Part shown: one piece after another, positions 47,701 to 52,849 of the stretch
How positions within the stretch are numbered: the first letter of the stretch is position 1
How the letters are laid out: each line of letters begins with the position of its first letter
Source: Pocillopora damicornis
Taxonomy: Eukaryota
Direction of reading: 5' to 3'
Length of the DNA: 64,000 bases
Assembly: GCF_003704095.1 (NCBI RefSeq)
Contig: NW_020847516.1
Span: 248,001-312,000 of the forward strand
Made by a program: the position numbers and the translations under genes
The notes under the pieces: model-generated
The model's database searches: none
Told to the model about the DNA's origin: nothing
What the model saw: only the letters and a program-made list of their open reading frames with translations

Positions 47701-48484
47701 TATATGGTAGTCTACCTTTTACCTACATCTAGGCAGTTTAGAAAGCTGCAAAACTCTAGAGCAAGAATTTATTTCTCAAACCAACTCAGTTGATATAACA
47801 ACATTGGCTAGTTATACTCCCCTACTGACACAGCACCATGGTTTCTTTAGAAACTTATCCCATTTATTTTAATATACTGTAAGTAGATATAGGTTGAATT
47901 ATAAAAGGACAAAAGTATCTACCAGCTTTACCATTTGCACAGACATATTTATGTTTTGGTGAAACTTGTTTTGTTTGTAGTTCAATTTTCAAACATATTG
48001 CCATGCTCAAAAACAAGGAAGATAAAGTTTGAATTAAGAATAATATAGGCTGGTGAAGATTCTGTAACTGAATGTACACCTAGTCTTGTTTCCATGTAAA
48101 AAGCCATACGAATATACTTTGAAGTACTTCTAACAATCTAACAGTTTTCAGTGTTCTCTAATTCTCCAATCTCTATGTAGACTATGTTCATAAATTTTGA
48201 AAGGGTGAAACCCTTCTTATTGTAGATGAAACATGCAAGTTCATCTTGTTGGCAAACAAATAAGATAAGTTTACCTATTATTTTGATGAACATGCTGCCA
48301 ATAAATTCAGCTGTAGCCACTTTCAAAGCAAAGTGAAATTAAATATGTGGTAAAATTGCAGTAAACAATTTAAAAAAAGTGACAAATTCAAATGTTTGAA
48401 TACAGATACTTGAAAAGTTCCTAACATAACTCCTCACTCCAAGTAGCAAGCACTGTATACATGTACAAGTTGCACATCTGTTAG

Positions 48485-51400
48485 TCAACCTTGCACTTGC
48501 CACTCCTTCAGATCATTTTCAAAATTTTGGTTGGCACACAAAAATGAAGAGTTTTTCTTTGGTAACACATGAATAACATGTCGCCTAGAGATTGACTTTT
48601 GAACACCTGGATGTGATATGTTGTCTCTTTGATACCCAGGACACCTCTCTGAGGGGCAGGCTGGGCCACAGTGAAACTTGACATGTGGAAAGTGCCCCCA
48701 ACAGAGCCATTTGACCATGCCAAACACTTGACTTAACACATTTGAAGGATGCTCATTAGCTGCTTCATATCTGTTGATATAAATGGTTCAATTAGAAGTT
48801 TTTCCATAAAAACTAAAGTCATTCTGTTTTTATCTCGCAACAATTGTAATACCAAAACAAAAAACCTCTCATAGAATGTACTTTGCAATAATTGAGTGAA
48901 TTGATTTATGTTACCCATTGAAAACATAGCTTATCTCATGTGAGTCGTTTATTCTAGAGTGTAGTTGCATTTTTATCATCAGATGTTGATAACTAAATTT
49001 TGTTTCTTTTTGTTTTTGTTCATGTACTTACTTTCAACAAAGGAGATTTAAGACTGAATCTGACCCAAATAAAAAAAAAATTGTTGTTTTGAAAATATGC
49101 ATTGTCACTGCAGCATAATTTGGCTTTACACAAATCACCTGGCTTGGGAAATCCCAACCACAGTTCCAGGTTTGCCATATGTCTTGGGAGGAAAAAGTTG
49201 ATTATGAAAGGATTATCACCATATCATATATCATACACTGGAGACAGTTGAGCTTTAATTCCTATTCATGACTGATATCCTTTAATTGCACAAACCTGTG
49301 GCTAAATGTCACTTCAATTATATTCTCTTCCTTAAGATGCAGCAGCCTATAGGGCTGAGTAGATGTTAGCCAAAACCTGCCAACATGTCTGCTTATGAGA
49401 GGCTGGCCCTTAGGGAAGTTTGCTTGACTAAGTTGGTGAGCACGTGATAGGAGACGATGGAAAAGAGGTTCTGGCAGGAACCTTTCAAAGAACACATAGA
49501 GCCGCTTGTCTGTGGGATGATCATTCCAAACTGATGCATTCCCATTCACTGAAACTGGAAGCAGTGCAGGAACAAAATGTGTTACTATTGCCTCTGTCAT
49601 GTCATTGTTAACCTTGTAAAATAAGGGACAAATAATGCCATATTCCTCAAGAAAGCTAGTCATAGCTTCTTCATTCTCTTGTATTGTAGTAAGAATGTGC
49701 CTCAAAAGGGAATTTGTAAGCATTCCCTTGTTGTGTAGTAATGTCCACTCTTTCCTGAATCCATGTTGTGAAAATAATTCATCATCTGTTTTTGGAGTGA
49801 TCAGTTGAATTGTGATGTCAACTAGAAGTGATGGCTTCAAAAGAACCCACTCAGAGATGACTGATTTCTCACCTTTGTCTATGTAAATTACAAGGCCTTT
49901 TTCATGAAAATACTTCAAAGTTTCCTTAGACCAGTTGCTGCAAATAAAGTCTCTAAATGAAGTTGGAAAATGTTTCAGGGATACACAGAACTTTGCGCTA
50001 CCATTCTCCCACAAATTAATAATTGCATCTTGAATTTTAATCCATGAAAATGGAATTGTTTGTCCCAAAGTTGTCTTGTTTTCCTCAGCTATGAGGGTCA
50101 TTGTCCTTTTAAGATTTTTAATTCCTCTATCATGAATTCCATTCTTGGATTCCACAGGAAAATACATCAACTTATCTTCTTCGTTCATTGTCAGATCATT
50201 AGAAAAGGTTTGCCAAAGGCTCTGTTGCAGATGTTTATTCAAATAACCAAGGCTGACTCTACTCATGTTTCCTCTGTGTGTACCAACAAGAAAGATTGGT
50301 GCCTTTGGCCCTACTTTGCTGTAGATGGATTCCAACCAGAAACAAATTCTTTGGATTTTCGCTTCTACATATTGGAAATTGCTGGCAGCAAAATGTGCAA
50401 GGTTGAATACAATAACATATATTGCTTGATTTCTGTAGAAGAGATGATGGTATGCTAAGTTTTCTTTTTCACCTCCAAAGTCTAGAATGCCCAATGTGAG
50501 ACTTGAGAATTTGACATTGAGAGCCTTTCTTAACTCTTGGTAATCTAGCGCTACCTTTTGTACAAAGATAAGCTTGTAAGTACATGCAAAAAGGTTTGAT
50601 ACATACTTTTCATTGAAGATTATTGCACAACAGGCACATCCTGCAAACAGTGCTACATAAGACAGCGTAGAATAAGATGATCTTGATCTGTAGAGCGCAC
50701 ACTCAATTACAAAAATAAATATAATTGGGCTTACAATTCCCTCCATGAAATGTCTTCCCTTGCACATTGAACGTATGAACCAAAGAAGTGATAAACCAAA
50801 CCCCAGCATAAAGGTATAATGAAGAATTTCACAGTAACTGACAATTGACATGTTGATCATCAATTCAGCACAGAAACCTAACCCAAAGCCGTTCATGAAA
50901 GATCCTATATCATAAAATAAACCCCCAGACCAAAAGAAAACCCGTCTGTGATTGTAGATTTTTACTTGCCCCGGAAGGGAAATTTTAATATCACCTCGAT
51001 ACCTATTAAGTAAACGCGAAAGGACCCATTTCTCCCTTAGGGGTCCAAGGAAGGAGGCAATAAATTTTCCAGTGAGAGGACTAAGGTAGAAAAGGCGTAT
51101 AATATATACTATAAATTTGTCACGAATCAAATATAAATGTTTACGTCCAATACACGGTAACTCTACACAGCAACAGTGGATCCCTTTGAAAAAACCGTTC
51201 ACTAAATGAGCAACCATGAGGCCCAAAGTGAAGTGAAGAGGACATGGAAACGTAAAGTGAACTAAGAAAAATGTAATATGTAACACTATCAAATGAGTTA
51301 TTAGATACGGAAACTTCCATAATAGCACCAAAGAGAATAAATACAGTGACCAAATCATACACAAAGACAGTGTTGATGTTCCATCTTCAAAAGCTAAGTA

Positions 51401-51808
51401 TTCTCCCGATGAAATAAAGGCTCTTAAGGAACGAACGGACTTTCCAAATCGAGCAAAACTTCCGAACGCAAGGTTCGCATTTTGCCACTCCTGGTCTACC
51501 GAGTTTGTGCGGACTCCCAATGTGCTTGGCTCTTCACTGTCGAACGGCTTTTTAATAAGAGCGTTCACAAGGCTCGTTTTTCCAACCCTGGAGTCACCCA
51601 GTATCAAACACTGGCCATTAAAAACAAACTGACTGTACTCCTCTTCATTTTGATGTTCACTTGGAAAATCAAGGTCTCTCAATAGCCTGTCGCATTTCTG
51701 CTTTTCTTCCGGTGAACCTTGATCAAGCTGCAAGCAAGCCATCAATTCAGCAGCAGTTCTTGAAGTGTGGTCGTCAGTTATATTTAAGTGGGTAATGGTC
51801 ACAGCCAT
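48485..51808 (-). CDS. Roco-family ROC-COR GTPase with a multi-pass transmembrane insert inside the ROC domain, ~932 aa, 2 exons
   Basis: Exon 51808-49296 plus phase-compatible exon 48770-48485. G1 GDSRVGKT (aa 71-78), G2 STLG, hydrophobic aa ~146-399, G3 DFGG (aa 443-446) followed by YHHLF..AIYVIVFNL, FWL, G4 LVGTH, then COR-like IPFSW, LKYFHEKGLVIY, VLLKP, FVPALLP. Confidence 0.9.
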
Positions 51809-52849
51809 CTTGAAATAGCAGTCTGTTCATGCGACAAAATCACATCCGTGTTCACGTGCCTCAGCCCAAAGTAAGTAGAAATCTCGAAGGATCAGGAAAA
51901 AAGTCAACGAGTCTAATTTTTATTTTGAGATCATTTTGAAGAAACGCCAAAGAAGTTTGAGTATACAACTTTTCGACTATTCCATGTCTTGTCTCTCCGG
52001 TTTTCTCCAAGCAATAACAAATTACAGACCACAACGGCATCCTCGCTTACAAGCTGAGGCACTGGGCCCGAATGCTTGGGAGCTGTCTTGGGGCGGAGTG
52101 GATGCTGGCAGGAGCCTGGTGATTACATGGTATGGTAATAATCTGGATGCCTCGGCTACATGAGATAGGATCGATAATTTCCTAAGTGTGGTTTTAAGCC
52201 TATGAACTGTAAGGTTCTGAAATGATTTATTCGGCTTTCAAGATCACCTGTCAATCATCACTCAAAGATCATGTGTCAATCATCACACATCCCCTTTTCT
52301 ACAAACAAAATAGTGCTCTAATTCTATGTGGAACGTTATAAGAAAGTGTTCTTAGACCTTATAGAATGTTATCGTCCGATTAACGAAAATAAAAGAAGCA
52401 AAACGTTTATGTCTATTCATGTTCAGACGTTCAAAAGTCCAATCGAGTTGGCGGCTTGATAATTCTTCCTAAACGTGTTTTGATGACTGTGGACGGAGGC
52501 TTGCTAAGTTTGATGTTTGTGCGTTCTTGTGAGCGAGATTAATTCCTTCTAGTTGAGAGTTCAAAGTTCCTCCCACATTTCTTTTTGGACTTGGTACGAG
52601 GTGATATGCGAACTTTGCGGACTTTGTCGCCCATATTTACCTCAGGGAGAAGTGATGCTTGATGACGTTTGTTGTAGTTCTCAACTTGTTTAAGTTTGCA
52701 CTTGCGTTCTGTTTCTTGCAACAGTTTCAAGTTTGGCAGTTTGGGAATCAGCTTGTCTGGTGACATTGGGAGGTAGAGCGTGTTTTCCTTTCCATGAGTA
52801 GCTATGCAGTGGGTGTGTCCGTTCTCCAGTGGTGTCGATTTGGGATAAG

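Follow-up and report, generated by a model that had tools for sequence, protein, structure and literature searches.

A coral Roco GTPase whose Roc domain is split by a predicted eight-helix membrane domain

We analysed a 64,000-nucleotide stretch of the stony coral Pocillopora damicornis (contig NW_020847516.1, positions 248,001 to 312,000; hereafter the window), which carries a Roco GTPase gene on the minus strand at 48485-51808. The evidence points, with a probability of roughly 0.7, to an expressed integral-membrane Roco GTPase with a lineage-specific domain of ~300 residues at the tip of its interswitch hairpin. This domain is modelled as a three-stranded beta stalk and eight helices, and the protein would probably act as a membrane-resident switch or scaffold. 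An earlier reading of the DNA letters, here called the sequence-only reading, had described a Roc domain split by a polytopic membrane bundle and proposed that nucleotide state gates the bundle or vice versa. Its architecture held: Roc is divided in two, the transcripts retain the insert, the layout is conserved, and we found no published description of such a protein. The function that it proposed is conjectural.

Gene structure and expression

The window DNA has 34-41% G+C and is eukaryotic. A single open reading frame of 848 codons occupies 49262-51808 on the minus strand, and the gene as a whole (48485-51808) has two exons and ~932 codons. From base composition, the chance that a 325-codon frame stays open at 38% G+C was calculated as ~2e-10. 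RNA contigs from four poly-A/oligo-dT/cDNA libraries, from four studies, were mapped onto 48300-52300. The results showed a splice joint at 48770/49296 common to three runs from three studies, which skips 525 nt with GT..AG borders on the minus strand; the donor (CAC AG/GTTTGT) and the acceptor (AACAG/A TAT) were both read directly in the sequence. Codon 838 is formed by AG+A and therefore encodes Arg, after which the frame is open for 94 more codons to a stop at 48485-48487. The lower bound of 48485 given by the sequence-only reading is thus a real one, the stop codon of a second exon.

Single contigs spanned 49296 to 52016-52042 in three runs with no further joint (the best being 2773 nt and 4242 nt), and a fourth run (X13) covered the same stretch in separate pieces. 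Because these contigs cross the entire hydrophobic insert unbroken, the insert is not spliced out, although they are unable to rule out rare isoforms. RNA across the insert had been set beforehand as a check, and spliced poly-A contigs kept it; the placement of all hydrophobic segments in one open exon was likewise borne out by the 848-codon frame and the unbroken RNA. The same holds for other members of the family, whose transcript-like contigs code for the complete spliced protein with the insert, so that ~400 aa separate G1 from G3.

The features of the gene, all on the minus strand, are as follows.
51809..52042: 5' untranslated region (UTR), from RNA contigs (X1 to 52042, X7 to 52034, X2 to 52016)
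49296..51808: coding exon 1, codons 1-837 and two bases of codon 838, from the open reading frame, unbroken RNA and the donor AG/GTTTGT
51635..51808: N-terminal region, aa 1-58, with a conserved LTDDHT motif; modelled as one strand and two helices
51482..51634: Roc N-half, aa 59-109 (beta1, P-loop, alpha1, switch I, beta2), from the Pfam Roc match at 68-105 and the Rab7 alignment
51575-51598: P-loop GDSRVGKT, aa 71-78
51521-51523: Thr96 of switch I (STLG, aa 95-98)
51365..51481: pre-membrane stalk, aa 110-148, FGSFxRF and a beta hairpin (122-133, 137-144), from the model and conservation
50591..51364: eight predicted membrane helices, aa 149-406 (149-165, 170-184, 191-207, 222-269, 287-317, 322-349, 356-373, 381-406), from hydropathy, AlphaFold2 and conservation
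50507..50590: post-membrane return, aa 407-434, a strand (411-421) and an amphipathic helix (423-433, LxxxxLxxAL) leading into beta3
50054..50506: Roc C-half, aa 435-585 (beta3, G3, switch II, G4 and G5 region), from the LRRK2/LRRK1 alignment and Rab superposition
50471-50482: G3 DFGG, aa 443-446
50270-50281: G4 THRG, aa 510-513
49296..50053: COR-A and the start of COR-B, aa 586-838, from a weak Pfam COR-A match (586-742) and a structural match
48771..49295: intron of 525 nt, GT..AG, phase 2, from the RNA joint
48488..48770: coding exon 2, the last base of codon 838 and 94 codons, end of COR-B, from RNA and conservation
48485-48487: stop codon; the 3' UTR runs on below 48300

Since the contigs end at 52016-52042, the transcript probably begins there, near 52040. 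The contig of run X2 extends 28 nt past ~52016 on the minus strand; these 28 nt match nothing in the window and could belong to a 5' exon lying farther off, reflect allelic variation or stem from a chimeric contig. In two runs the intron (48771-49295) lay under RNA contigs of low depth (~6-7, against 27-30 in the exons), which look like unspliced precursor or some intron retention. An antisense frame of 132 codons with a TTG start at 50060-50458 (plus strand), within the Roc C-half, is most likely a chance frame. The N-terminal 58 residues matched no known Pfam family.

Exon 2 matches the C-terminus of the Stylophora models P0003 and P0044. Its tail is conserved at 43-76% identity and contains the invariant motif FP.VKFHCGPAC.S..CPG, plus RRH. 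Across the family His33, Cys34, Cys38, Cys43, His64 and Cys78 of this exon are invariant, and these residues may form a metal-binding knuckle at the end of COR-B.

The two parts of the Roc domain and their modelled reassembly

Switch I Thr96 and G3 Asp443 lie 347 residues apart, against a usual distance of ~20 residues; the sequence-only reading had estimated ~340 and had placed GDSRVGKT, STLG and DFGG correctly. The Pfam Roc profile (PF08477) scored 56.7 bits (cut-off 27), with its match broken into two stretches. In phmmer searches against the Protein Data Bank (PDB), aa 67-99 aligned to the G1/switch I region of Rab7 and aa 435-513 to the G3-G4 region of the LRRK2/LRRK1 Roc domains. Pfam COR-A fell below its cut-off in the window protein (15.6 vs 35.3 bits) and reached at most 30.5 bits in the homologues. 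No Pfam match to LRR, ankyrin, death or kinase domains was found in the window protein or in five annotated full-length homologues, in agreement with what had been said from the letters.

We then modelled the exon-1 protein with AlphaFold2, using an alignment of 52 homologues (predicted local distance difference test, pLDDT, 67.9; predicted template modelling score, pTM, 0.62). The order of elements in the model was beta1, P-loop, alpha1, beta2 (98-103), a hairpin, eight helices, a strand, a helix, beta3 (438-443), and then the remainder of Roc and COR. When the insert was modelled by itself, the same elements appeared (pLDDT 73, pTM 0.68). Whole Rab/Arl chains superposed on the modelled residues 61-580 across the gap with Z ~16-17: Rab32 (4cym_A) fitted rigidly over 173/177 residues (root-mean-square deviation 3.6, Z 16.9), ARL1 over 162/164 (deviation 2.9) and Rab6 over 164/164. 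Across Roc and COR, LRRK2 matched over 378 aa (Z 24.7), LRRK1 over 397 aa (Z 24.6) and the Methanosarcina barkeri RocCOR over 311/323 residues (Z 23.1). Overall, the Roc-COR matches, which also include Chlorobium tepidum Roco, had Z 18-25 and Foldseek E-values down to 1.7e-11. In the model, the two Roc halves thus rebuild one Ras-like G domain, followed by COR-A and COR-B. The presence of the remaining Roc and COR after the insert, as claimed earlier, was supported by Pfam, PDB alignment and structural match, and the folding of both halves into one G domain, proposed as a check, by the Rab/Arl superposition on the model.

Predicted helices and topology of the insert

The insert contains a hydrophobic block at aa ~149-400 (nt ~50609-51364) with hydrophilic flanks, close to the nt ~51373-50612 noted before. 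Mean hydropathy over 52 homologues peaked at ~150-168, 172-205, 236-255, 293-316, 331-346, 358-372 and 381-395. Family averaging gave 7-8 peaks and AlphaFold2 eight helices in both runs, which fits the earlier count of 6-8 segments. The Kyte-Doolittle family mean was 1.1-1.7 per segment, and seven windows were favourable on a second hydropathy scale. Seven of the eight segments carry ~1-2 charged residues each; the second, which is longer in most homologues, carries ~3.

The insert leaves and re-enters a single cytosolic G domain. The number of helices must therefore be even, and the bundle must start as well as end on the cytosolic side; the eight helices of the AlphaFold2 models fit this requirement. 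Lys plus Arg amounted to 5.2 in 43 residues of the predicted cytosolic loops, against 3.1 in 50 exoplasmic residues. Cys212 (94%) and Cys326 (90%) both fall within predicted exoplasmic loops, while the conserved PGQxK lies in the cytosolic loop joining helices 4 and 5. The exoplasmic loops total only ~50 residues, and a large ligand-binding ectodomain is therefore excluded.

Under the reading that we prefer, the bundle would fix Roc-COR to the membrane. The stalk (FGSFxRF, PGQxK and the LxxAL helix) would tie it mechanically to the part of the G domain that shifts most when GDP is exchanged for GTP. For output, the cytosolic faces of Roc-COR and the COR-B tail, rich in Cys and His, are likelier routes than a conserved-substrate channel, and the signalling might be of the death-fold or innate-immune type. 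Nucleotide specificity may be altered, since G4 has lost its Asp. The role rated most likely was that of a membrane-resident switch or scaffold, because no functional residues are conserved in the helices, very little of the protein lies in the outer loops and the sole functional clue is a Death domain in a hemichordate relative.

Conservation of the insert and the possibility of a passive anchor

Homology searches returned 73 matches among 5.8 billion proteins, of which more than 50 were full-length (850-980 residues, 33-98% identity, 99% query coverage). The species named among the homologues are Stylophora pistillata, Pocillopora verrucosa, Acropora millepora, A. digitifera, Montipora capricornis, Porites lutea, Oculina patagonica and Desmophyllum pertusum. 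Together they represent the two principal groups of Scleractinia, "complex" and "robust". The database labels were "uncharacterized" or "pats1/roco5-like". In all of the more than 50 full-length homologues the insert was kept, with an open frame and a hydrophobic sequence, so the same split architecture, which the sequence-only reading had proposed to look for in cnidarian genomes, is present in other stony corals.

The insert, notably its helices, is the least conserved part of the protein. Its few near-invariant positions are FGSFxRF, Gly205, Cys212, Pro279-Gly280 (PGQxK), Cys326 and the LxxAL helix after the bundle, and Gly205, Cys212, Pro279, Gly280 and Cys326 all sit in loops or where a helix ends. 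Inside the helices, the family alignment of 52 sequences showed no polar or charged residue that is conserved. We calculated the Nei-Gojobori ratio of nonsynonymous to synonymous substitution (dN/dS) against three orthologues of 91%, 72% and 65% identity. It was 0.72, 0.65 and 0.47 in the helices and 0.24, 0.28 and 0.23 in the rest of the protein, with 0.17-0.19 in COR. Eight near-identical variants from independent assemblies all kept the frame, and their amino-acid variability was 0.108 per site in the insert vs 0.065 elsewhere. These findings indicate that selection keeps the insert open, hydrophobic and helical and does not keep its exact sequence. Purifying selection on the insert, named earlier as a point to verify, is therefore visible in the open frame and in dN/dS below 1, but it is weak (0.47-0.72).

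One alternative is that the bundle merely tethers an ordinary Roc-COR to the membrane and that its position within Roc is a tolerant loop without meaning. Two tandem Roc-COR-like genes elsewhere in the genome (L006/L007, G000 contig C1630, ~11.2-21.5 kb; G4 motifs THSG and TRRA) have an insertion between beta2 and beta3 as well, in their case ~140 residues long, hydrophilic and rich in Ser, Thr and Arg. The site is thus evidently permissive in this group, as a hot spot for insertion would be, and L006/L007 may be relatives of the membrane-split family with an expanded loop, or its forerunners. A tether would also agree with the fast evolution of an insert in which essentially hydrophobicity alone is retained. 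However, eight helices far exceed what anchoring needs, FGSFxRF, PGQxK and LxxAL hardly vary among the 52 sequences, and two conserved Cys lie on the same predicted face. We regard a purely passive anchor as doubtful, though worth serious consideration.

Searches for relatives of the insert and the possibility of a gated channel

A profile built from eleven inserts was searched against 1.84 billion representative proteins and gave 38 matches with no free-standing relative; all were full-length proteins matched at the insert position, or short fragments. A word-index search with the insert alone returned the five closest orthologues only. Against PDB folds the best Foldseek match had an E-value of 0.69, and against 48,161 chains the best VIA-align match had Z 7.7 and covered a helix hairpin only. 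The ESM Atlas held nothing for the coral insert or for its counterpart in the acorn worm Ptychodera. The insert had no Pfam match, including no intein or transposon domain. In the P. damicornis genome the profile matched three loci, namely the window gene, a tandem paralogue and one on another contig; all are family members, and the insert is therefore not a repeat.

A second alternative is a GTP-gated channel, transporter or pore, in which the nucleotide state of Roc would gate the bundle of eight helices (16 in a dimer), or in which the GTPase would be under the control of a ligand bound in the bundle. Insertion exactly in the interswitch hairpin, between conserved stalk elements, speaks for such coupling, as does the lack of any other effector domain by Pfam in the coral proteins. 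FeoB, the prokaryotic ferrous-iron transporter, offers a precedent: one polypeptide combines a Ras-like G domain and a polytopic permease, and control of the permease by nucleotide state has been proposed. A channel is, however, hard to reconcile with helices that contain no conserved polar or charged residue, have their near-invariant positions at the ends and in loops, and are the least conserved region (dN/dS 0.5-0.7). The exoplasmic loops are very short, and the fold searches matched no solved channel or transporter. We consider it improbable.

Nucleotide-binding motifs and the possibility of a pseudo-GTPase

Across the 52 family members, the P-loop GKTS was present in 52/52, the switch I Thr96 in 49/52 and G3 D443..G446 in 52/52. 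The G4 motif departed from this pattern. It reads G-T-H-R-G, with Gly513 in 50/52 coral members, whereas LRRK2 has THLD and Ptychodera THRD. In Ras-like GTPases the G4 Asp reads the guanine base; because it is replaced, guanine specificity or affinity may have changed in corals. Position 516 is E, D or N in 44/52 members, and this acidic or amide residue might replace the G4 Asp. The change at G4 lowers confidence in guanine specificity and does not lower confidence in Roco homology.

A third alternative is a G domain that no longer binds or hydrolyses GTP, in a purely structural membrane protein. The THRG motif favours it, and so do the relaxed dN/dS values of the Roc C-half against the two closest orthologues (0.49-0.64). 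The conservation of GKTS, of the G3 residues and of the switch I Thr argues in the opposite direction, as do the THRD retained by the hemichordate relative and the residue at 516, which might stand in for the Asp. We give this alternative little credence.

The weakest explanation, that the insert is absent from the mature protein (as a retained intron, nested element or misassembly) or is hydrophobic without spanning the membrane, would be compatible with rare isoforms and with the predicted nature of the membrane placement, but it is very improbable given that spliced poly-A contigs from 3 studies retain the insert, that it is in frame in >50 homologues and in the 8 variants from independent assemblies, and that its profile finds only family loci and no Pfam intein or transposon domain.

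Related genes in the coral genome and in an acorn worm

The tandem paralogue (G000:C4151:313776-315680; L003, L005, L018) is 41-43% identical to the window gene and lies on the same strand ~14 kb upstream, 1.8 kb past the end of the window. The family is thus locally duplicated, and in the tree each copy pairs with a different Stylophora gene. A further copy (L002, G000:C2075:58791-60065) matches only aa 415-840, at 48% identity, and is interrupted by two in-frame stops; further upstream its frame encodes hydrophobic sequence, and its G4 is THCEHID. It is possibly a pseudogene or an intron-interrupted copy.

A search seeded with the most divergent coral member found the Ptychodera flava protein XP_070562819 (P0198, 992 aa). 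This protein has its P-loop at residue 54, switch I EPSTEGI, G3 WDFAGD at 480 and G4 THRD at 544, followed by COR-A and COR-B. Its insert of ~390 residues shows at least 6 strong hydrophobic peaks between 162 and 446. Residues 1-961 are encoded in one exon, and the layout is therefore not an annotation fusion. The Ptychodera membrane-split locus is L021:3001-5883 on CM083790.1 (proteins P0198 and P0202). The Roc halves and COR of P0198 aligned to the window protein with E-values of 4e-10 and 1e-27. Its COR-B tail (889-947) aligned to the coral exon-2 profile at 3.5e-5, including a C-G-x-x-C-P motif, and Pfam COR-B was matched in the Ptychodera relatives. When the coral insert profile was compared with P0198 by hhalign, the probability was 0.6%, and homology of the two inserts was not shown. 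The paralogue P0202, 92% identical to P0198, carries a C-terminal Death domain (28.6 bits vs a cut-off of 22.6).

We built a tree from the Roc and COR columns, without the masked residues of L006. The coral membrane-split clade received support of 99/98. The tree did not resolve the relation of this clade to the Ptychodera clade, the coral hydrophilic-loop Rocs and an Argonauta Death-Roc, and a single clade of all membrane-split proteins was not rejected by the approximately unbiased (AU) test (p 0.39). The membrane-split layout may therefore have one ancient origin or have arisen by convergence.

A bolder proposal is that stony corals and hemichordates share an ancient metazoan class of proteins in which the interswitch hairpin serves as a drive shaft. 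The GTP cycle or the Roco monomer-dimer cycle would then reshape a membrane device, such as a pore, a scramblase-like groove or a fusion/fission element, with death-fold signalling downstream. If true, a G protein and a 'receptor' would be fused at the level of secondary structure. We hold this proposal to be speculative and unlikely.

Discussion

The reading of the coral protein as a membrane-resident switch or scaffold has several points to meet. The helices rest on hydropathy and on AlphaFold2 models of moderate confidence, in which several segments have pLDDT below 50, and hydropathy counts for single sequences gave 5-9 segments with a mode of 7. The insert is weakly constrained, since dN/dS of 0.72 against the closest orthologue is not clearly below 1, and such constraint suits a passive tether as well as a coupled module. 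The G4 Asp is missing in 50/52 members, which makes GTP binding itself uncertain. The link to immunity or cell death comes from a single paralogue in a hemichordate, and its insert could not be aligned with that of corals.

The coral protein resembles LRRK1/LRRK2, C. tepidum Roco and M. barkeri Roco2 in that Roc is followed directly by COR-A and COR-B. Those proteins are soluble and have a short beta2-beta3 turn, whereas the coral turn holds ~325 residues with eight hydrophobic helices; the coral protein also lacks LRR, ankyrin, kinase and WD40 domains and has THRG instead of THLD at G4. The hemichordate P0202 joins Roc-COR and Death, as do the Death-domain Rocos (human DAPK1 and invertebrate Death/TIR-Roc-COR proteins, for example Argonauta P0073). 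The coral proteins, in contrast, have no Death or TIR domain by Pfam, and the known Death-Rocos have no membrane insert.

Compared with FeoB, in which an intact G domain and a permease stand in series, the coral membrane domain is nested inside the G domain, and the fold searches showed no sequence or fold similarity between the two membrane domains. G-alpha proteins show that a Ras-like fold tolerates a whole inserted domain, which there is soluble, helical and placed before switch I. In Arf the interswitch hairpin relays nucleotide state to a membrane-facing element, the N-terminal amphipathic helix. The coral insert differs from both as a predicted embedded bundle in the interswitch hairpin, neither a soluble domain nor an amphipathic helix. 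Atlastin, mitofusin, Miro and SR-beta are likewise held permanently in the membrane by their own helices; these number one or two and lie outside an uninterrupted G domain, whereas the coral helices lie within it.

Ras-like G domains are among the best-studied protein switches, and we know of no case of a polytopic membrane domain nested inside one. Full-text architecture searches and term look-ups of the searchable literature did not turn up any account of membrane helices in a Roc or Roco protein, and in a Roco review (PMC6337361) the word "transmembrane" never occurs. Two results are new here: the split layout in an acorn worm, where one paralogue carries a Death domain, and the coral G4 motif THRG, without the Asp that specifies guanine. 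The sequence-only reading had missed both the replaced G4 Asp and the fact that the layout is not confined to cnidarians.

Because the interswitch hairpin changes between the GDP and GTP states, an insertion at this place is a natural experiment in how a membrane domain can be joined to a nucleotide switch. The family of LRRK2, the Parkinson's-disease protein, would be extended to an intrinsically membrane-bound form, which may aid the understanding of Roc-COR at membranes. The sole functional hint for the coral family is the Death domain on its hemichordate counterpart. For coral biology, these findings describe a lineage-expanded, fast-evolving and tandemly duplicated gene family that is expressed and would act in signalling at the membrane.

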